From Fimbriosthenelais zetlandica (Eukaryota), in the NCBI GenBank assembly GCA_977030845.1, contig OZ365113.1, forward strand, positions 20,026,001-20,090,000: a DNA stretch of 64,000 bases. Direction: 5' to 3'. The notes under the pieces are model-generated. The model was not told where the DNA came from. It saw only the letters and a list, made by a program, of their open reading frames with translations, and made no database searches. The position numbers were made by a program, and so were the translations under genes. This document shows, piece after piece, positions 38,051-63,000 of the stretch (position 1 is the first letter of the stretch; each line of letters opens with the position of its first letter).

Positions 38051-38134
38051 CCATGAATAAAATATAGCAAATTTCAGGACAATATCAAGTCGCCATGAAT
38101 AAAATATAGCAAATTTCAGGACAATATCAAGTCG
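38051..38134. repeat. Perfect 42-bp tandem duplication
   Basis: ccatgaataaaatatagcaaatttcaggacaatatcaagtcg x2. Confidence 0.95.
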
Positions 38135-45839: not shown

Positions 45840-45989
45840 CTACATCCCATCAACACTTGGTAGAGAATCATTGCTTTCATGATTACCGATGGGATCATCA
45901 TCGTGTTCCCGCATGGTTGTCTGAACGGGTAGCTTCTTGTCATAGCCTCTTTTTCCTACCAACCAATATGTCTGCATGGACCCTTTACC
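45840..45989 (-). CDS. PstS-GC terminal exon ([12 protein letters not shown]...SVDGM*)
   Basis: Acceptor ttttcctcttgcag|GGT. KGKGxMxTYWL is the conserved end of class III cyclase domains. Stop TAG at 45840-45842. Confidence 0.93.
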   Translation of the reverse strand, partial: GKGSMQTYWLVGKRGYDKKLPVQTTMREHDDDPIGNHESNDSLPSVDGM

Positions 45990-48900
45990 CTGCAAGAGGA
46001 AAAACAAATCATTATCAGGAAAACCAGGAAGTTAATGAGATTTTTCAGACAACTTTCATAACCATTATATTAATGTTCCAAATCAGGGTTCCTGTAGTTC
46101 GGAGATGATCAAATTTAAAACTTTTTTAAAATACTTTTTAAGACCAATGATCCTCATTTTTAACACCTAAAATTCGCACTTTCTGACAAAGAATAGTCGG
46201 CAAAATCGCCAGTTAAATCATTGATAACATCGTCAGTAGTATAGTGGACAATGGCGACAAGGCCTTAAATTTTCCCAAAACCAATTTAAGACTTTTTAAT
46301 GCCGCGCGGGAATCCTGCAAATGAGCATCTTTCACAGTAAATGATGTGATGGCTTCTATTCTCACCATTAGATCGCATGTTAGCCCTACCTTCACGCTAC
46401 AGGTAAAACGTTATAAGGAGTTCTAGATGAAAGAAAATTTAATGAATCCACTGGAGTGACCAGTACAGGAGCTCCTGTGTGATTAATTAGGCCTACACTC
46501 ATATTTGCCATCGTCTTCATGGGACCACCTCAAAGCATGTTAGAATGATTAGTGGTGAGAGATAGATTCATTGTCAAAGCCAGCTGCAACGCTTCTTGGA
46601 ACATAGATATTGAACAGCGCTGTTGTGAATTTAACATGAGGCATGTTATAACCGTCGTCTGCCTCTTAACTAATGTCAGCTTCAGGCAGGAACATTCGAT
46701 TACATAATGTGAAGCAGAATAATTTTACATGACAAATTTCACATTCATCTATGAAACAAAACATTAGTAGGCCTACTTAAAACATGTTATGGTCATACGA
46801 TTTTAAAGCGGGTAACCATAGACTGGATTTAAAAACGGGACTAAACATCTCTAATTAATTATTTCTTAATTTATAATTACCTTTATCTCCATGTTGCCTC
46901 TTCGTCGTATTTCATATCCCCCGATGGTATCCAGCACCTTTTTTGTAGAAGAGGACAAGTGGATTTTCATGGGTCTTGAATTGGTTTCCATTCTTGAGGC
47001 AGTATTGACTGCATCGCCAAACAAACAGTATCTTGGCATCTTGTTTCCAACCACGCCAGCGACCACTGAGCCACTGTTTACGCCTATTCTGATACGAAGC
47101 ATCTCCTCTGGTCTATGCTTTACTTTGAAGCTGCCACAGGCCACTGCAATGTCCAGGGACATATTGGCAATGTGCGAGGCATGCATTTTACCGTTTCTTG
47201 TTGGTAACCCTGATATGCACATGTAAGCGTCACCAATAGTTTCAACCTAGAAGAGAAGTAAATCATGAGATCATCAAGTGCTACATGAAAATACAATATT
47301 TAGCTACAATATTTAATAATTATCCAAATCCCTTTCTTTGACATGGTACTATTACATATATCGTTGTATCCTTACAAGCATTAATTTGAACGTACCTTAT
47401 ACACATCATGGGCCTCAATGACAGCATCAAATGTTGTGTATAAATCGTTGAGAAAGTCAACAATTTCCAAAGGTGATGATTCTGCCGCAATGGTAGTGAA
47501 ACCCACAATGTCGGAGAAATAGATAGTCACCGACCCGAACGCTTCTGGACTGACAGACTCTCCACGCGATAAGGAATCTGCAACTGAAGCTGGTAAGATC
47601 TTGTGCAACAACTCTTCAACTTGCTTGAGAGCTGCATTTAATTCGATTGTTCTTTCATTCACTTTGTCCTCCAAGTGATCGACGTATTTTTCTAGTTCTT
47701 CCATCATACAATCAAGTAAACTCTTCCTGTTGGGATTAGCTTGCTTGACCATTTTGATTACTTTTGAAAATTGAGGACGACCGGCAGGTTCAGGAGACCA
47801 GCAAGCAGTTAGGATGGATACCATTCTTTTTGGCATCTCTGATCCCAGCTCTGGCCTGTAGTCACCTTGGTAAATATCTTTAATTATTTTCTTGGGTTCT
47901 TTCTTTGACAGGGCTTCATCAAACGGATGTTTTCTAATGAAAAGTTCTATAACTGCCATAGAAAAACTGTAAACATCAGAATATTTTGTCGGGGGCAGAT
48001 ATCTGTCAGCGAGAATTTCAGGAGCGGTCCAAAACAGGTGGTTTGCAATCATATTTTCGTCGGTGCCTCCGGAATCTACATCAGAAAGTTCTCCAAGTAC
48101 TCCAGACCTGGTGATGATGTCCTGTGATGCGACCAGTTTTGTGTACTGCCAATCACCAACTTTGATTGTCCATCGGGAGTCAATGTAACAAGTGGCAGTA
48201 CTAAGAAAGCCATGGATTACATGATTCTGGTGTAGATAGTCCATGCCCATAGCTATGTCCATTGCCATAGTGTATTTAAAGTTGTCATCCAGATTGAAAC
48301 GCTCGCTATGTATGACGTCCTGCAAGGTGCCTTTCGTGCAATATAGGCTGATCAATTGGGTCTTCTTATCAAAGTCACTTATGCCATAGAAATTCACCAC
48401 ATTCAGATGATTTACTGTATCCCGCATCCACAGAAGCAAGCGCTTCGTACGATGCCTTAGTTCTTTAGGATCTTTGATGATGGTAATGGTTTGTATGTTC
48501 ACTAGTTCCCCATTCCATTGTCCGAACATCAGTGATTCAGGGTGGTCATGGTTTGCCTGCGACTTTCTAGATGATTTTTTTTCGGCCAGACTTCCAGCGC
48601 TCCTTGTGTGTCCTGTTATTGAACTATCAACAGACACAACCGACTTGGCGTTTATATTTTTCATAATGACTATAGAACTTGAAGGAATTATGTACTCTTT
48701 TAGAAGAATGGCTTTGTTTAGTTTCACTTGGTGATACACTATGTAGGCGACGAACAGTAAGAGAAGAAATATAGCAATGGGCAAGGCTATAAATAGTGGC
48801 GTACGCCATGTCTGAGCGGCAAATATTTCCATATATATCTCTTCCTCTACCAATTCCTTAACACTTCTCCCTTTACATGAAAATTCATTCAAAACCTGAT

Positions 48901-50319
48901 CAAAGATCCTAGTTGCGACTGCAGTACTCAGGGGCACCATACCCTTTGCAATGGTGGTATTTCTGGCAGTACTACTAGTCAGAAACCATTCAATGTAGCG
49001 ATAGAGAGCTGTTGCAGATCTACAGTCCTTCATAGTTGTTTTGTAGATAATTAGATAGGTGAAACTAGATATAGGATAACTGCTTCTTCCCGGAGCATCA
49101 ACGATGGAGAGGGTCATTTTCGAGGTGAATCCAGCTGAGAAGGCGTCCATAGCACTCTGTATTGTGGTCACGTTGGCCTCCACCAAGACATCGTCCTTGT
49201 TGAAAATCCTGGCTGATTGTAAACTAAAACTGACCGCATCAGCAGCTGACAGATAGCCGAGGGAGTAACGAATGGACACGAGTAAGCCAGCCATGCCAGT
49301 ATTAGTGTTTCCATAAAAGGAAATGGCATTAGGGTTCCAATGTACAGGTACATAGTTATCCAGTCCAACGCTGAATGATCCGTATGTGGCGTTCCATTCA
49401 GAACTGAAGGCGCTCAACGTACGAGTGAAAACGTCGGTGGTTCCTGACTTGTCAGATCGAGCCAGGACTATGATTTTAGAGTTGGGCAATGTAATGCCTG
49501 GGTTAGCTATGGCTATTTCTGTATCGTTCCACCACGTTATGGTTCCATTGTAGATGCCCACCACATGCTGACGTTTGAGATTTATTTGTGGATTATTCGG
49601 GAGATGGTAGGCAAGAACTACAGCCCTGGAATAGAAATAATTGATGAGTCTGGGTCAGTTGGGATTTATGTTATATAGGCCTAGAAGTATGTCACCTGTC
49701 CAAGCAGGATCTAAACCATCATTTTCCGCAAGGAACAAATCCTATGACTGATCTAACTTGCAAATTAAAGGTAAACATTTAACATCACAACTCACCCAGC
49801 CATGGTTGGAAACATTTGCAGATCTTGGTGAGTCAGATATTCGTTTTCGGAAAGTATTGAATCTGAACCAGCGTATTCCACGGGATCTCCATATCCTTCA
49901 ATTCTGGCTTTGCCTGCACCACTCCCAACAGCGTCATAGATCATATTCAGCGAGATGTCCCTTATCCTCTACAAATAAAACAAACACCCCGAGTTACTGG
50001 AGCTAACCAACATCAAGATTGAAGCGATAGTTGAAGAAGAATATGAAAGTTTCATACATATGCCTATAGAACATAATGGTTCAACTTTATGGTTGTTGCT
50101 AAGAATTAATAGATTTGGGGTTCAACACTGTTCATAAATATTTCTTAATAAAATGATCAAACTGACCTGGTACAGGAGAATCCATTGTTTGTAGACTGCA
50201 GATGGAAACGATGCTCCAGCTCCACGGAGCTGAACAACTTCACTTGCTGCGGCTACCTGGAGTGAGCATTGGGTCACTAAAGCCAGAGCCACACACAGAT
50301 AGAACGTCCACTGCTGCAT
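45840..50319 (-). CDS. Receptor guanylyl cyclase with PstS-type (type II periplasmic phosphate-binding) ectodomain; join(50167-50319,49796-49968,47396-49625,46881-47246,45840-45989), 1023 aa
   Basis: Five exons with GT-AG boundaries and consistent phases (0,2,0,0) sum to 3072 nt = 1023 aa + TAG. Domain order: signal peptide, PstS motifs ([33 protein letters not shown]), one TM helix, kinase-homology domain, coiled coil, cyclase domain ([36 protein letters not shown]). Confidence 0.93.
46881..47246 (-). CDS. PstS-GC exon: guanylyl cyclase catalytic core
   Basis: Acceptor cttctcttctag|GTT, donor AAG|GTAATT, 366 nt. VETIGDAYM...[38 protein letters not shown]; the GTP-specifying Glu (KVE) and Cys (RYC) are present. 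Confidence 0.96.
47396..49625 (-). CDS. PstS-GC large exon (2230 nt): rest of PstS domain, TM helix (~48734-48799), kinase-homology domain, coiled coil, start of cyclase domain
   Basis: Acceptor ttctattccag|G, donor AAG|GTACGT. Matches ORF 47381-49564 extended to AVVLAYHLP. The intron falls at the conserved DVYK|VETIGD position. Confidence 0.95.
49796..49968 (-). CDS. PstS-GC exon ([58 protein letters not shown]); missed by the ORF track
   Basis: Acceptor tttatttgtag|AGG, donor GG|GTGAGT, 173 nt, phase 0 to 2. Contains the PstS Y-x-x-x-GSGAG and (D/E)-(F/Y)-x-x-SD motifs. Confidence 0.92.
50167..50319 (-). CDS. PstS-GC exon: signal peptide and start of PstS domain ([15 protein letters not shown]...[24 protein letters not shown])
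   Basis: Hydrophobic N-terminus followed by LRGAGASFP (cf. E. coli PstS LTGAGATFP). Donor CAG|GTCAGT at 50167; the exon's acceptor is at 50354. Confidence 0.88.
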
Positions 50320-50692
50320 GTTATCACGCTGCTCATGTCTGTTCACATGACGACCTGAAAATATGGAATATTATTGTTACATTTTCTAAATGGCAAACAT
50401 TTCAGACTCCACAACATTAACTCATACAGCCAGCCTATGTGGGCCTGGTTATTTTCATTATTTGAATTTCCTGAAATCAAAGGTACTATACTGTTAAACC
50501 TTAACTTTCTAAGGACCAAAACTATAGGGACTACCAGCACTCCGGTTCATCCATTTCAGCAATGCCAAAATCTTTGAAGGCCAAAACTGTTGAATTTTAT
50601 AATGAAATAGTACCCTATATAAATAAATTAATTGTATTCTCAGTTCTATTAAACAAACAGAAGGTAGATTTAGTAAAATATGCAATTCTTAC

Positions 50693-51064: not shown

Positions 51065-51172
51065 AATTTAAAAAATAAACAATTACAAGCTGTCTTGCAT
51101 CAATTTAAAAATCAACAATGTATAAGCTTTCTTGCATCAAATTTAAAAATTAACAATGAATAAGCTTTCTTG
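51065..51172. repeat. Minisatellite, 37-38-nt unit x3
   Basis: aatttaaaaat(c/t)aacaatg(t/a)ataagctttcttgcatc-like units start at 51065, 51102 and 51140. Confidence 0.85.
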
Positions 51173-54065: not shown

Positions 54066-57000
54066 CTACAATTAAGAGTCGAGGAGAAAAAAAATTAAAT
54101 ATTTTGTTGAATATGTTAGCTATCCTGAATGTGACATGTTCATTCAAAGTACTGGATAGTGTAGTGTATATATTATGATTTTTATCAATAATAACTGTGT
54201 CTGTACATGTGTTGGTGGGGACGGGTATATTATTAGATATCATTTAATTATATCCATGTAATTAAAAAGGTAAGGTAATACCGTATGTCAAGCAAGCATG
54301 CAACACCAAACTCTGACCATCACTAATGACTTCCGCATCATAAGCACATACAATTGCATTGCATACCTGGAGGCAATGAAGCTTTTTTGTTTTTGTAACC
54401 GCAATTACTTGATGCACCGATGATCAATATATCTTGCCAGGATTAATTACATGCATGATGTAGTATAATTTGGGAAGGAAAGTAAACGTTTGGAATCAAC
54501 AAACAAATGGCCAAAAGATGTAAAGCTAATGGACTGGCCACAAAAGAGAGGAGAAAGACAGAGAGGGGACAGAAAAAACACAAGCCAAGCCACCAAAGCA
54601 AGATCTAAGAAAACAGGTATAATCATATGTTAGAATTCCAATCAATGTTATCAAATCAACACAAGGAAACAGACAAAGACAAGGAGGAACAAATTCACAC
54701 ACACCCGCAGAAACAATTAGGGTAAAACAAGAATGTAACGTGTGGGGAAGGAATATATAATACTCAACAAGCACGTTTTGAATACACTTTAAATGTAGAT
54801 TCAACGGAAAAATCAGTACCAACACCTGTAGCAGGAAAGATAACATGTGATACAGAAAGGAAACTTATTAGTAAAATAACTTAAATCTAACTTATTATTA
54901 AGATTAGGGATGAGGTAGGTTGTACTCACCAGCAGTCGTTTACCATCAGCGTCATTATCGATGATTTGTGGCTGGGGTTGGTGGGAGGGTAGTGAGTTGA
55001 CCGGGGTGTCACCTGATGATATTTCACCAATCTCTCTCCCCTCATCCTGCTCCTCCAGGTCTGCTCCAGTGTCTACCACCTCCTCTGATCCATGATTCAC
55101 CAATGTTTCCTGTTCTATTACTTCCACTCTTTCCTGTTGCGGTTCTTTCTCTTCCTGGGTTTCATCTACCTGATCTCTGTCACTTGTTTTCTCCTGTTCA
55201 CTTTCAGTGCTATGGACAGTTTGCTCTGTTTGCTCCTGCTGCTTCCCTTCCTCCACTTGCTTCTCTTCCTGGCACTTCTTCGTGGGAGGTTCAAGGGAAT
55301 TAGATGAAGAGCCACTAGTAGTTGGGGTTTCCCCACTCGATTTTAGAACCAAATCAAGGTCCTGTGATGAAGGAGCCTCTCCCATCTCCTCCACAACACC
55401 TTCGTCCGTCGTTTCAGTGGCCTGAGCTGATGGGCTGGGTTTACAAGTTGTATTTTGATCAGATTGTACAACCTTTTCATCTGGGGAAATCACTTCGGTA
55501 GATATGACTTCAGTTGACTTCGCCACTTCAGTAGAGATGATTTCAATGGACTTCGCCACTTCAGTAGAGATGACTTCTTTTGACTTCTCCGCTTCTGTAG
55601 AGATGATTTCAACTGACCTCGCCAGTTCAGTAGAGATAACTTCAGTTGACTTCGCCACTTCAGTAGAGATAGCTCCATTTGACTTTGCAACTTCAGTAGA
55701 GATCACTTCAGTTGACTTAGCAACGTCAGTCGACATGACTCCAGTTGACTCCGCTACTTCTGCGGATATAACTTCAGTTGACTCCGCTACTTCTGCGGAT
55801 ATAACTTCAGTTGACTTCGCAACTTCGGTAGAGATAACTTCAGTTGACTTCGGCACTTCAGTAGAGATAACTTCAGTTGACTTCGCCACTTCAGTAGAGA
55901 TAACTTCAGTTGACTTGGGCACTTCAGTAGAGATAACTTCAGTTGACTTCGCCACTTCAGTAGAGATAACTTCAGTTGACTTCGCCACTTCAGTAGAGAT
56001 AACTTCAGTTGACTTGGGCACTTCAGTAGAGATAACTTCAATTGACTTGGGCACTTCAGTAGAGATAACTTCAGCTGACTTCGCCACTTCAGTAGAGATA
56101 TCTCCAGATGAGTTCGCCACTTCAGTTGACTTCGCCGCTTCAGTAGAGAAAATATCAGGTGACGTTTCCACTTCAGCTGACTTCGCAGCATCAGTAGAGA
56201 TAACTTCAGTTGACTTCGCCACTTCAGTAGAGATATCTCCAGATGAGTTCGCCACTTCAGTAGGGGTCACCGCCTCCAGGTCCTGTAAAGAGTCTGTACC
56301 TCTGGCCTCACCTTTCCCCGAGCTATCAACCTCGGAATTGAGTGACGATTCCCCTTCAGTTTCTTCCTGTGGTGGAGGTAGGGAATTGTCAGGAGAGGCT
56401 ATCAACTTCCTCCGTGATTTAAGGATAGAGCCGTATGTAGACACCAGTTTATGTGCAGGACTTCTCACTTCATCATCGTCCATCCTCTTCTCCTGACTGG
56501 TTTTCGATGTAGGGCTGAATAAATGGGACATGCCTTCACCTAAAAAGCGTTTTTTCCTATCACTCTCGCGGAAACTGTCATCAAGATCAGGTGGGGCCTC
56601 GGCTAAATCCTCGCCAAGCTTGGCCATCTTGTCGGTATAGAGGCGGCGCTTTTGGCCTCTCGCCCTTTTCTTGCTTGAGGTGAATAGAACGTTGACGTCA
56701 GGCCCATCAGTTTTTTCTTTTACAAGTCCGATTTTCTTTTCTTTCACATCAAGGACCATCATGCTTTCGTTTCGGCTTTTCTTGGCTTTCTTAATTTTGT
56801 TACTTTTCTTTCCTCCCGTCTCGGGTATAAACTCAGGATCTTCCATATCTAAATCACTCTCTGAATCTGTCTTTCTGGCTCCTTTCCTCTTGGCACCTTT
56901 CGCACGTTTACTTTTCTTTCCCATCGCCTCGGAAATGAACTCAGGATCGTCCATATCTAAATCACTATCTGAGTCTATCTTTCTTTCACCTTTCCTCTTG

Positions 57001-60000
57001 GCACTTTTCACAAGTTTATTTTTCTTTCCCATCGCCTCTGGAATAAACTCAGGATCTTCCATAATATCACTATCTGAGTCGGTCTTTCTGGCTCCTTTCC
57101 TCTTGGCACTTTTCACAAGTTTATTTTTCTTTCCCATCGCCTCGGGAATAAACTCAGGATCCTCCATAATATCACTATCTGTGTATATCTTTCTTTCACC
57201 TTTCCTCTTGGTACTTTTCACACGTTTACTTTTCTTTCCCATCGCCTCTGGAATAAATTCAGGATCTTCCATAATATCATTATCTGAGTCTATCTTTCTT
57301 TCACCTTTCCTCTTGGAACCTTTCCCAAGTTTACTTTCCTTTCCCATCGCCTCTGGAATAATGTCAGTATCTTCCATATCTAAATCACTATCTGAGTCTG
57401 TCTTTCTTTCACCTTTCCTCTTGGCACTTTTCACACGTTTACTTTCTTCATCATTATGGACCTTTGTTTTGCTCTTTGCTTTTTTAGACAACTTGCCTTT
57501 CAGCTTTGACTGCGTCTGACTTCTCGCTTCATCGTCAGATACAGTTTCACTCAATCTGCCTTTGCGTTTCTTAGAACGAGATCGGGGAAGTTCTACTATA
57601 TCCTCTTCAAACTCCTTTTCTAAGTCGTCAGAAGTGATTTTCTCCTCTCGAGCACCACTGTCACTCTCACTGTCCTGGTGGTGAGATATTTTATCCGGGA
57701 CAGTATCTTCATCTGTGCTGATTTCAATGAGATCGTATCTCTTTCTCTCTCTTCCCTTATTTCTACTTGATGATCTTATATTTTTCACCTCAGGCGATCT
57801 CTTATGTTCTCTTTTTTTCTGCACATTCATAGAAGATTCAGCACATGTTCTTAATGTCATTCTGTGATGCCAATCTGAATCCTCAGACGTCAACGACTCA
57901 GACAGCCGATCCTGGGAGGAACTTCTCTTAGGTCTTTTTGGGATGATTGAAAATGTTTTTTTCTTGATTTCCAGGCGAGCTTCACTTCGAGTGACTTGCT
58001 TATAACTTTGATCGACATCGAAAACAGGCAACTCCTCTAATGAGGAATCCAGAATGATTGGTACAGGAACCTTTCTAGATCTCTTGCTCCTCCTTGATTT
58101 ACTTGATTTATGGCTACAACCACTTTTGGCATCATCTATTTCGGAATCTAACTCAGAGCCAACATCCTCGCCACTTTCAGACACCATAGGCTGGATGTCA
58201 TCTTCATTCAACAACTGTTCGAATTTCCTTTGCATGCTATGTACACGTTTGGGCTCCACGACAGTGATTCTTTCCAAACATACTTTAGGTGACAAGATGG
58301 TAGAAAGTCCAATGTCTGATGGTGGCAGTTCATCATCAGATGGCTCTGTTTTTATAACAGCAGTCCCATCCTCTTGCTGATCTAAATTCTCTCTGTTACT
58401 TTCCTCTTGATGATGTGTCCTTTTCCGAAAATCAAATAGCAATGCTACGTCCGCGAGGACAACCTTGCAATTTTTGTATATCCGGTATTCTGTGGCAAAT
58501 TTGGACTTTGCGCTTTCCTGGGCAACTTCGGACCTAGTACTTTCCTGGGCAAATTCAGACATAGCGCTTTCCTGGGCAACTTCAGACATAGCGCTTTCCT
58601 GGGCAATTTCAGACAGAGCGCTTTCCTGGACAACTTTGGAGCTAGCACCTTCAAACTCCTGCAGCTCATCGTGAGAACTTTGTTCTGAAGATGACAAAGG
58701 GATTTGACTTGCACTCAAAGATGGCGAGTTAGAGGCACTTTTTACCCTCCGTGGTCTTCCTCTCCCCCGTTTAACTGGCGACTGCTGCCCCGAGTCTGGC
58801 GTCTTCCCACCTGAAGGTTCAGGGGAAGTCAATACCAGGCGATCGGACTCAGAACTATCATAAAGAAGCTGCTGGCTTTTCTTTTTATTGACTCTCAGTT
58901 GAGAAGGAGATAGGGAAGAGTCTAAGTCTTCAAGTTCACAGGCGTCCTCAGTGTTGGTTTTGAATTTGCCAGTGCTCCTCGTCATTGGAGAAGAGAATTT
59001 TACTTTGTCATTCACCACTTTTTCACCAGATTTAGTATCACCACTGCTCGTAATGTTCGAATCGGACACCAACACTAGAGATGAAATATTAGAACCACTT
59101 GACTCCAGATAAGTTATTTCTTGAGCAAGTAACTGTTGATCTGAACTTGTGGCACACACAGATTCTGCCACAATAACCACAGGTTGGTTGAGTGAAGTCG
59201 AGGGGACAATATTGCCTATTTTAGCAGCGTTTTCACTGGAGATTGGAGATGCTTTTCCAGTTTCCCTGGTAAAGGCAGATTTCGTCTTTCGCATTTTCTT
59301 TCCTTTACTAGATAAAGCTTCGGGAGTCGGGGGCAGGTGTGAATCAGATTCAGGAGCCACTTTCTCATTAGAATCTGTTAGTGGAGAAGGGGAATCAAAT
59401 AAGATTTCGGGGGACAAACAGTCTTCTGGAACAACAGTTCTCCGGGAGGGAGTATCATTCTTGGCTTTTCCTTTAAGATTGAGCGCTTTCTGACCACTCA
59501 CTGCAGGAGAGACTGATCTGGTTACCCTTCTTGACAATGATGAAGGTTCAGAGTCACTTGAAATTTCAATTTTTTTTGCTGTGTTGTTCCTCGCTCCAGA
59601 CTGCGGTGTCTTTTGCCTAGAGCGTGGTGTCTTCCCAACTGATGGTTCAGGGGAAGCCATTCCCAGAATATCTGAATCTGAACTATTATGAAGACTTGAA
59701 TTCGCAGATGGTGAGGTGGAGGCACGGTTTACCTTCCGTGGTCTCCCTCTTCCCCGTTTGACTGGCGACTGCTGCCCCGATTCTGGTGTCTTCCCACCTG
59801 AATTTTCTGAGAGATTGGTTCCCAGGGGTTCTGAATTTGAACTAATATACATTTGGAGACTTTTCATTCTATTGACTCTCAATTGAGCAGGCGATAGGGA
59901 AGATTCTAATACTTCAGGTCCACAGGCATCCTCTTCAGAAGTCGCTGCGTTTTTTCCCATTGTTCTAGTGCTCCTGGTCACATGAGAAGAGAATTTGGGT

Positions 60001-63000
60001 CTGACAGTTACAGCGAGTTCATTCTGGTTTTGATTAGAGTCACTATTAGACTCTGATGATTTTTCTTTTTGCTCATCAGATTGCCGCGAGAGGACGACAA
60101 TTTCATCTGCGTCCATTAGAGGCGTTGGGAATCTTGGGCGATTAGTAACTCTCTCCTCAGCCCTTCTCTTTTCAATATCGCTAACAGGTCTTGAAGGACT
60201 ATGGACGACAGCTTGCACTGTGAACCTGCAACTTTCACTCATATCGTTTTGATTACTAACAGTTTGTTGAGAACTTGGGAGGACGGGAGAGAGCTGGACA
60301 TCTGGACGTGGCACAGCCTGAGAAGCCTCATCAATTTGTGTTGAATGGTATTGCGTGTGCGGAACTAGTGCTTGGTCTATTGTCGAGCCATCTTCACTTG
60401 GGGATTTTCTTTGTGATCGAGGAGTCTTTGGGACTAATGGACTAATTTTACTGCCTTTTTTGGATTGGGCACTGTCTTTGAGAATGTCTTTGAGTTTGTA
60501 ACTCGGCTTTGGTCTGCGTGGAGATCTTCGTGGACTCTCATCTCCTGATAGTTCAACAGATCGTATATGTTTAGCAATACTGGATTTAGAGAGGCTAGAC
60601 CTAGAATCACTATTTGGTTGACTTTTCTGAATTTTCTCACATGTATCCCTTTGTACACGTTTGTCCTTCAAGGACGATTTAGAAGACGGTGTGACACTTG
60701 CTGATGAACCCCCAGAGAATTGGTGCATGATAATCTTTCGATTTATCATTGATGCCGGTGCTTTCTGTGCCTCTGTTGTTGGAGAATGAATGTCTGTAGA
60801 TTCCTTTGAGCCATCTGCCTGTTTAGATGCCCCATTGGTGAAAACCCGACTTTGTGTATTGTCCACAAATGAAGTAACATCACAAACACTTAAGTCCACT
60901 TCTTCCAAACACTCCCCGACATCCTTGATTAAATTAGGCACAGATATATCAAGAGCATCAGGTACTTTCCTCACCTCAGAGCTGGGGTTCTCTGAGTTAG
61001 AAGTGCTCTTCTTGCGACCGGGTTTCTCAGTCAGTGCCTTCGTTTTAGATTTAGGTTTCACAGGCGTATTTCTCCGAGAACTATCACCCGAGGCACCAGG
61101 GCCATCACCAGAGAGGGTGACTTGATGAGTGGATGATGTGTCACTGTCTGTACTAGGAATTCTTTGACCTTGCGTCGAACCTATACTGTCATCATCTGTT
61201 TTGCCACTAGTGACACTTATCTCACCACTTTGCTGTCTCTCAGAAACGGGCACCACTTTAGTTGCTGTCTTCACAGCACCACTCGTGGTAGCCTGCTCTG
61301 GCTGGGGCTGTATACTTTCTGGGCTGGCGGATTTATTATTAGATTTCTCTCTCGTAGAGACATCCTTGGCTGAAGAAAGGGTGGCAGAAGGATCCAGCGA
61401 CGATTCCTGTGATTCCTGTGGTGGACGGTAGTCAGCTTTCCATCCTAGAAATTGACAAAGAGCAAATAAGCCAAAATGTCACTCAACGAAAGATTTTATT
61501 ACAATTTAAAAAAAAATCATTCAGAACGAGAGTAGATGACAGACTTACTAAACTGGGTGTAATTTGTATTGCTTCGATTTGGGGATTGTCTTTAATAATA
61601 TTATATAAAAGTTATATTTAAACTTACTCTCAATGCTTTCTAGAATCTCGTAGTCGGCTCTAGGAATGGCAAATTTCTGTAAGGACTTGTCTAATGCGCT
61701 CACTCTCTGACAACCAGGTAGATCTTTCAAGGATAAACGATGCATGGAGACTTTTTTGGTAAATATACCACCATGTACTAAAGTCGTATTACCTCCTGAA
61801 ATACAAACGTGGATTGTTTTAAAAACATAAAATTAAAACATAAAATTAAATTGATCATCTCATATACACATATACTTGCATGTACAGGTTTCTATTTTTA
61901 CATTAACTCCTTCATGGAAATTCGTGAGGTTCGAACCAAATGTTTTTTATTTCACTTTTGTGTTGATAAATGAAATAAATAAATAAATATTGAAATACCT
62001 TTGTCAGGCCCACTTATTAATAATAAATATTGAAATACCTTTGTCAGGCCCGGTTGTATTGCGTTCCACGGTCTCTCTTCTTGAGTCTGTAGCATTGCTT
62101 TTTGCTCTCTTCTCAGCATTCTTCTCAGTAGATTTATCATTCTCAGGTCCCCTGACACTGCTTTCTGCAGTCATCTCATTCTCCGAGTCTGTAGCATTGC
62201 TGTCTGACGATTTCTTCTTGTCCGAGTCTTCATCTGAGGGACAATTAATGCGCTGTACCAGTTGAGTCAGTTGTGTGGAGTTTAAGGAGTCATCAACTTG
62301 GGAGGCAGATATCTGACTTGCTTCAGTTGAGCCTAAAGTACTCGTGCTTTTACTTCTTGCCGCCAGTCTGAAATGTCACACAAACAATGATTAAATCAAA
62401 TCAATGTTCAGGTACTTTTTCACACAAGTTCCGAAGGACATTTATAATGTAATATAATGTATTTTGAGACTGCCTACTCTAATTTCACAGTCCATGAACT
62501 CATTCTTACCTCCAATTCATCCAAAGTTGAGCTGACTTTCGCTGAACATCGGGCATTTCCATGCTACAAATGAAAAGAAATCAATTGAATTCAATAATAA
62601 GGGAGAGGAGTAGCATAATCTCGTAGAAAATTATGGTCAGACTAAAAATAACCTTTTATCAATTTCGTTTGAATTTGTGGTAATGCGAAGAATTTGAAGA
62701 AGCCTTCTCAGACATATCACAAAGTTAAATACATCGTTTTTAATTTACATAGTCCTCCTTAAGCAGCTAATATTTACTCACCAGTATTTCAGGCTCGACT
62801 TCATTCGACACCCCGTGTAGTTGCCCCATGTCTTGAACCCATTCACCACTAACTCAAAGAAGCAGTCGTTCTGTGGGAATAAATTCAGGAAACTGTCAGG
62901 AATGTGCTATCACTAAGAAAGGTAAAATGGTAAACAACAGAAGTGAAATAATACGAGCAAATTCTTATAATAAACAATATACAAAATTATTTGCATACAC

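Follow-up and report, generated by a model that had tools for sequence, protein, structure and literature searches.

We analysed a 64,000-nucleotide stretch of the genome of Fimbriosthenelais zetlandica (contig OZ365113.1, positions 20,026,001 to 20,090,000); this whole stretch is referred to as the window, and all positions given below are positions in it. One of its genes is predicted to encode a single-pass receptor guanylyl cyclase (GC) of a spiralian family, in which a PstS clamshell stands in the place of the ANF ectodomain. With a probability of roughly 0.55, we read the protein as a candidate one-component sensor linking phosphate to cyclic GMP (cGMP). A preliminary description of the locus had proposed a spliced gene at 45840-50319, encoding 1023 amino acids with a signal peptide, a PstS-like domain, one transmembrane helix, a kinase-homology domain, a coiled coil and a cyclase domain. 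The gene was rebuilt from the window with the same result, and the proposed span coincides with the ends of the coding sequence, from the first base of the ATG to the last base of the TAG.

The gene lies on the minus strand (50319-45840) and consists of five exons, read from the sequence and assembled by script; all introns are GT..AG. The spliced coding sequence of 3072 nt is translated into 1023 amino acids, and its single stop codon is the terminal one (TAG, 45842-45840). The features of the gene are the following:

50319-50167, minus strand: exon 1, residues 1-51, with the start codon ATG at 50319-50317 and the donor GTCAGT; it contains a signal-peptide-like hydrophobic segment (about residues 1-25), followed by the first PstS strand with G-A-G-A-S-F-P.
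49968-49796, minus strand: exon 2, residues 52-109, PstS lobe I; acceptor AG, donor GTGAGT.
49625-47396, minus strand: exon 3, 2.2 kb, present as a 727-codon open reading frame in the mechanical list of open reading frames.
49625-48857, minus strand: first part of exon 3, residues 109-365, remainder of the PstS domain, with five N-glycosylation sequons as well as C310 and C359.
48856-48737, minus strand: exon 3, juxtamembrane stalk (residues 366-386) and transmembrane helix (residues 387-405).
48472-47732, minus strand: exon 3, kinase-homology domain (PK_Tyr_Ser-Thr), about residues 494-740.
47719-47552, minus strand: exon 3, dimerisation or signalling helix, about residues 745-800.
47548-47396, minus strand: exon 3, beginning of the cyclase domain, residues 802-852; the motif F-S-D-I-V contains D814, which binds metal.
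47246-46881, minus strand: exon 4, residues 853-974, cyclase core with E854, D858, C926, N933 and R937.
45989-45840, minus strand: exon 5, residues 975-1023 and the stop codon, last cyclase strand and acidic C-terminal tail.

About two-thirds of the PstS domain, the transmembrane helix, the complete kinase-homology domain and the linker helix are all encoded by exon 3, as is the beginning of the cyclase; the fusion is therefore independent of splicing. The objection that the PstS exons might not be spliced to the cyclase exons, which the preliminary description had raised against itself, has little force for the same reason. An open frame of 727 codons with E-values such as those given below is far beyond chance. 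None of the four exon junctions coincides with a gap in the alignment to the annotated Owenia fusiformis protein P0050 (1042 aa), to which the window protein is 45% identical over residues 25-1005. A family member with an intact cyclase in another species (L002; GCA_022702835.1, JAKGBL010007673.1, 821-4343) has the 2/3 and 4/5 intron positions in common with the window gene and lacks the 3/4 intron. Many database open reading frames of the PstS-cyclase family start exactly at the 2/3 boundary (profile positions 80-86). When the product was compared with the whole window by tblastn, one copy was found and no tandem paralogues were present in the 64 kb; the flanking sequence in the window is normal for a eukaryote. 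As regards the start of the gene, the main ATG carries an A at -3, and an out-of-frame ATG is located just 5' of it (50330-50392, minus strand), a possible upstream open reading frame of ~20 codons.

The predicted order of domains is signal peptide, PstS domain, helical stalk, transmembrane helix, kinase-homology pseudokinase, dimerisation helix and class III cyclase. The Pfam and NCBIfam scans were run exon by exon, not on the whole spliced protein. The preliminary description had expected PBP_like_2, PK_Tyr_Ser-Thr and Guanylate_cyc in the absence of ANF_receptor, and this is the combination seen in Pfam: exon 3 matches PBP_like_2 (2.9e-16, 60.5 bits with the cut-off at 27; profile positions 93-265), PK_Tyr_Ser-Thr (1.4e-32) and the first part of Guanylate_cyc (9.4e-13, profile positions 3-53), exon 4 matches Guanylate_cyc (6.1e-41), and none of the exon translations matches ANF_receptor (PF01094) or the NIT domain (PF08376). 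ANF_receptor is present in the ordinary receptor cyclases P0012 and P0013. There is one strong transmembrane segment (residues 387-405, hydropathy 2.96 over 19 residues), and the N-terminus is hydrophobic and signal-like.

Concerning the intracellular half, it aligns to human GC-A in two blocks, residues 540-887 (E 5e-61) and 888-1009 (E 3.8e-47). The kinase-homology domain reads H-G-F-L in place of the H-R-D-L of active kinases, as in other receptor cyclases. The dimerisation helix gives a match under the cut-off to the C-terminal part of HNOBA (E 0.0071), and its region aligns continuously to the linker helix of GC-A. Six residues, D-E-D-C-N-R, define a GTP-specific class III cyclase; the hexad is intact in the window protein (D814, E854, D858, C926, N933 and R937), and the cyclase motifs and catalytic residues quoted earlier for this locus were all recovered. 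The window protein is thus among the forms of the family that are predicted to be catalytically active.

The identity of the ectodomain was approached through sequence profiles, the ligand pocket and the fold. When the part of the ectodomain encoded by exon 3 was compared with the sequences of the PDB, only phosphate-binding and DING proteins were matched, the best being Xanthomonas PstS (3.3e-23), with E. coli PstS at 2.5e-18; the full-length ectodomain of a family member matches E. coli PstS at 1.7e-31. In NCBIfam, the PstS equivalog TIGR00975 matches exon 3 alone with 5e-45 (153.9 bits, profile positions 79-310) and exon 2 with 18.3 bits (profile positions 30-75), while exon 1 shows a weak PstS match to NF008171 (19.5 bits). 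The whole ectodomains of P0017 (Tubulanus) and P0023 (Chromosphaera) reach 212 bits and are above the TIGR00975 cut-off of 205. Five of the seven N-x-S/T sequons of the protein are in the ectodomain. C310 and C359 are invariant in the family and absent from E. coli PstS, and the MAFFT alignment also shows a short insertion, specific to the family, that separates the S-G-T motif from the conserved block after it.

Luecke and Quiocho are said to have described, in 1990, how T10, F11, S38, D56, R135 (with D137), S139, G140 and T141 hold phosphate in E. coli PstS; D56 reportedly excludes sulfate and the R135-D137 pair is reportedly part of the site. In the MAFFT alignment to E. coli PstS (L001), the window protein has S/F/S/D/R/D/S/G/T at T10, F11, S38, D56, R135, D137, S139, G140 and T141, so that the phosphate-ligand positions are identical save for T10, which is replaced by S. 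The equivalents of T10 and F11 lie in the G-A-G-A-S-F-P motif of exon 1, those of S38 and D56 in the G-S-G and A-G-S-D motifs of exon 2, and those of R135, D137, S139, G140 and T141 in the R-S-D-K-S-G-T motif of exon 3. Judging from their entry titles, the PDB includes structures of D56 and D137 mutants of PstS, i.e. these are studied residues of the site. Conservation was counted over 86 proteins with one PstS domain and a kinase-homology domain: R135 is present in 86/86, G140 in 85/86 and S139 in 82/86, and position 141 is always occupied by T or S (86/86). Among the proteins that include the N-terminus, the counts are 26/26 for S38 and 25/27 for D56. This pattern places the pocket under selection.

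The fold agrees with the pocket. An AlphaFold model of the ectodomain of the Owenia orthologue (pLDDT, the predicted local distance difference test, 95.8; pTM, the predicted template modelling score, 0.91) superposes on E. coli PstS with a TM-score of 0.87 in a fold search of the PDB, as the preliminary description had anticipated for such a model. Its best 48 PDB matches are all phosphate-binding proteins, and the first binder of another anion, ModA, is found at rank 49. In a fold search of Swiss-Prot, the 30/30 matches listed are prokaryotic PstS or DING-type entries, with no eukaryotic protein among them. In the same model the stalk is helical (H351-366) and runs into the membrane. The preliminary description had allowed that the ectodomain might score better to a non-phosphate binding-protein family; in the PDB sequences, TIGR00975 and the fold of the orthologue, it scores to phosphate-binding proteins only.

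Judged by its sequence relatives, the window gene is a member of a large spiralian family and not a one-off. The nearest proteins are P0001 and P0002 (50-51% identity). In word-indexed searches, of which the top hits were taken, the combination of PF12849, kinase and PF00211 was found in molluscs (Haliotis, Patella, Gigantopelta, Liolophura, Pecten, Argopecten, Mizuhopecten, Ylistrum, Mercenaria and Solemya), annelids (Owenia, Dimorphilus and Paralvinella) and nemerteans (Lineus and Tubulanus), and the restriction to Spiralia holds among the matches listed. PstS-domain members that are partial or have no detected cyclase are seen in the molluscs Nucella and Bulinus and in the leech Helobdella. 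Several paralogues per genome are common. Among the names given to them automatically are ‘atrial natriuretic peptide receptor-like’, ‘speract receptor’, ‘retinal guanylyl cyclase-like’ and ‘gcy-29-like’. The architecture, for which the preliminary description had suggested a search across metazoan proteomes, is not unique to the present gene, since a large spiralian family is already in the databases under misleading names.

When 1.84 billion representatives were searched exhaustively with a profile, 13,816 PstS-like matches were obtained. Among the best 150 of the 13,816 representatives together with the word-search proteins, 41 proteins combine PstS, kinase-homology and cyclase domains, and 26 more are truncated PstS and kinase-homology fragments; the named animal members among the matches listed are all spiralians. 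Outside animals, the ichthyosporean Chromosphaera perkinsii and Fabomonas tropica have two PstS domains with a kinase-like domain and a cyclase, and Willaertia magna has PstS and a cyclase without a kinase domain. Further PstS-domain proteins are found in Entosiphon, Andalucia, Palpitomonas and the fungus Calcarisporiella. The set of protist-type PstS receptors comprises P0023, P0044, P0045, P0046, P0084, P0172, P0080 and P0102. Proteins with four PstS domains occur in Chromosphaera and Entosiphon, PstS is joined to a PARP domain on a Logan contig, and to GCC2_GCC3 in Palpitomonas.

In a tree of 199 ectodomains, all animal receptor ectodomains, including that of the window protein, fall together in a single starred clade (99) with 87 rows. 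Andalucia branches next, followed by Chromosphaera, the fungus and other long proteins, and the animal ectodomains are nested in a clade whose named members are all eukaryotic. A short relative, P0191, whose cluster is represented among the best 150 by P0103, is encoded in a true pstS-pstC-pstA-pstB-phoU operon; the operon protein falls in a separate starred clade of 43 rows. The placement in the tree, which is indicative only, speaks against recent transfer from bacteria to an animal. Recent transfer or contamination was also considered as an origin of the gene and was ruled out by the introns, the starred all-animal clade (87) and the grouping with eukaryotic PstS away from the operon clade. 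The term ‘bacterial-type’, used earlier for this ectodomain, is apt for the PstS fold and its ligand residues but not as a statement of recent acquisition, as the ectodomain groups with eukaryotic PstS, including protist PstS-cyclase fusions. The protist relatives suggest that the PstS-cyclase design may predate animals.

In the tree of the intracellular parts, the animal PstS receptors form a starred clade (98) apart from the three ANF-type cyclases; the Chromosphaera part groups weakly with ANF-type cyclases, on a long branch. Every named mollusc copy, as well as Lineus P0009 and Tubulanus P0017, belongs to a derived clade, also starred (99), in which the catalytic residues are degenerate: the members P0006, P0007, P0009, P0015-P0021, P0047, P0197-P0199 and P0201 have lost most of the hexad and kept the phosphate pocket. 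The forms with an intact hexad (window, Owenia, Paralvinella, Dimorphilus, the second Lineus paralogue and other relatives) are outside this clade. The members with a degenerate cyclase may act as pseudo-cyclases, or may pair with the intact forms as heterodimers.

The window protein shares its topology with the receptor GCs of the natriuretic-peptide type (GC-A/NPR1, GC-C, the retinal GCs and the sea-urchin speract receptor), namely one transmembrane helix, a pseudokinase, a signalling helix and a homodimeric class III cyclase with D-E-D-C-N-R. The difference is in the ectodomain, which is a type I ANF_receptor in those proteins and has the type II fold (PstS, PBP_like_2) here; as seen above, the intracellular parts of the animal PstS forms also make up a clade of their own. 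The conceptually nearest precedent is given by the NIT-domain GCs, invertebrate receptor cyclases with a bacterial-type anion sensor for which nitrate/nitrite has been proposed, and which are widespread in invertebrates but were lost in vertebrates (PMC1592074, PMC7400543). Like the window protein, they are animal cyclases with a bacterial-type ectodomain for an inorganic anion; unlike it, they have a helical NIT domain between two transmembrane helices, whereas the window protein has a PstS clamshell and one transmembrane helix, and the proposed ligand differs.

The PstS of the bacterial PstSCAB importer has its fold and phosphate-ligand residues in common with the window ectodomain. It is, however, a free partner of an ATP-binding cassette (ABC) transporter, whereas the window domain is tethered to a membrane receptor and would feed a cyclase; the window domain also shows eukaryotic features, namely introns, a signal peptide, sequons for glycosylation and a further two invariant cysteines. 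Binding-protein domains also serve as sensory input in prokaryotes. In the sensor kinase BvgS, fused type II clamshell (Venus-flytrap) domains control the cytoplasmic output via a helical linker. The chemoreceptor CtpL of Pseudomonas aeruginosa takes phosphate-loaded PstS as its signalling input, with a dissociation constant (Kd) of 9 nM (PMC8050422). Both systems differ from the present one in being prokaryotic, in having PstS as a separate protein (CtpL) and in their outputs, which are chemotaxis or a histidine kinase and not cGMP. The PstS-cyclases of Chromosphaera, Fabomonas and Willaertia belong to the same ectodomain family, with domain numbers and outputs that differ from those of the window protein. 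The so-called human DING/HPBP proteins match the ectodomain weakly, and Swiss-Prot assigns their sequence to an unidentified prokaryote. A chytrid class C G-protein-coupled receptor with a PBP_like_2 domain was mentioned in 2012 (PMC3251606). No description of a PstS-type ectodomain joined to a guanylyl cyclase was found in full-text searches of the literature on PstS, PBP_like_2, PF12849 or phosphate-binding together with guanylyl cyclase. As the sequences are already public with their Pfam domains, the novelty is in the recognition of the architecture and its function, not in the sequence.

In the proposed mechanism, orthophosphate (or its mimic arsenate) would bind outside the cell between the two PstS lobes, and the closure of the lobes would alter the geometry of the receptor dimer. 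The change could then pass via the stalk and transmembrane helix to the kinase-homology domain and signalling helix, so that cGMP synthesis by the cyclase dimer would be altered. Such coupling is plausible by analogy with the type I clamshells of GC-A, the fused type II clamshells of sensor kinases, and PstS-CtpL. Several points weigh against the phosphate-sensor reading. The exon pieces of the window ectodomain sum to roughly 170-190 bits and are under the TIGR00975 cut-off of 205, which marks it as a diverged PstS; the structure was predicted for the 45%-identical Owenia ectodomain and not for the window protein; and that the closure of a normally monomeric PstS is read by a dimeric cyclase is an argument by analogy alone. 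In addition, a PstS with nM-µM affinity would be permanently saturated in body fluids and hence of little use as a sensor, except where it is exposed to sea water or has drifted in affinity.

The last of these points leads to the main rival explanation, that the PstS domain is always occupied by phosphate and serves as a structural or dimerisation module, the cyclase being run by intracellular partners, pH/bicarbonate, temperature or a pseudo-cyclase paralogue. We regard this as improbable, though still deserving serious weight. With a Kd of about 10 nM for bacterial PstS (PMC8050422), saturation is likely in most fluids. Many members of the family have lost catalytic residues yet keep the pocket, which hints at roles beyond ligand-gated catalysis. 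To our knowledge, several animal receptor cyclases, e.g. the retinal GCs, have ectodomains without a known ligand. Against it, the conservation of the ligand residues across about 86 diverged proteins exceeds what a scaffold would seem to need. Moreover, phosphate in surface sea water is sub-micromolar to low micromolar, within the range that a PstS-like site can resolve.

Less likely than permanent occupation, given the pocket, and unlikely in our view, is a real receptor for another ligand, such as a phosphorylated metabolite or peptide, pyro- or polyphosphate, phosphite, sulfate or another oxyanion. The ectodomain is diverged (24-28% identity to solved PstS proteins), carries the family-specific insertion after the S-G-T motif and is below the TIGR00975 cut-off when scored in pieces, and sequence alone does not reveal the range of ligands. 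However, the nine pocket positions match E. coli PstS (T10 as S) and are conserved family-wide; they include D56, which reportedly excludes sulfate, and the R135-D137 pair of the site, and the first 48 ranks of the fold search contain no binder of sulfate, molybdate or phosphonate. That the locus is not a working animal gene at all, i.e. a silent pseudogene, an assembly chimera or a contaminant, is very improbable, given an open frame of 1023 codons, canonical introns, catalytic and ligand residues that are all intact, two intron positions in common with L002, a fusion inside one exon, a single copy with normal eukaryotic flanks, and a place in both trees, ectodomain and intracellular, within the starred clades to which all named animal members belong.

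The phosphate-sensor reading can be extended, more tentatively and at somewhat less than even odds, to the proposal that the family would be the first dedicated and direct cell-surface receptor for orthophosphate in animals, its design coming from an old eukaryotic PstS-cyclase line that was kept in spiralians, with the pseudo-cyclase paralogues as regulatory partners.

The window also contains a neighbouring gene (54813-61274, minus strand) with a single 2153-codon open reading frame of low complexity, rich in Ser/Lys/Glu and with no Pfam family above the cut-off. It includes two tandem arrays that keep the reading frame, 33 bp x 23 at 55491-56263 (an 11-residue repeat of the S-T-E-V type) and 105 bp x 6 at 56800-57445. 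Intergenic tandem repeats are found at 51065-51172 (38 bp x 2.9) and 38051-38134 (a perfect 42 bp x 2).

The preliminary description had stated that no dedicated metazoan phosphate receptor is established. This stands for dedicated receptors, but mammals do have proposed sensors of external phosphate; these are only multi-purpose proteins, e.g. CaSR, and reviews still ask for the sensor (PMC6795806, PMC8199323, PMC10104895). How animal cells detect external inorganic phosphate is thus unsettled, and a sensor domain whose ligand can be predicted residue by residue, with a measurable cGMP output, would make the question testable in annelids, molluscs and nemerteans. The family also shows, alongside the NIT-domain cyclases, that receptor GCs are modular and that several ancient sensors of small anions have been built into them, a modularity which names such as ‘atrial natriuretic peptide receptor-like’ conceal.

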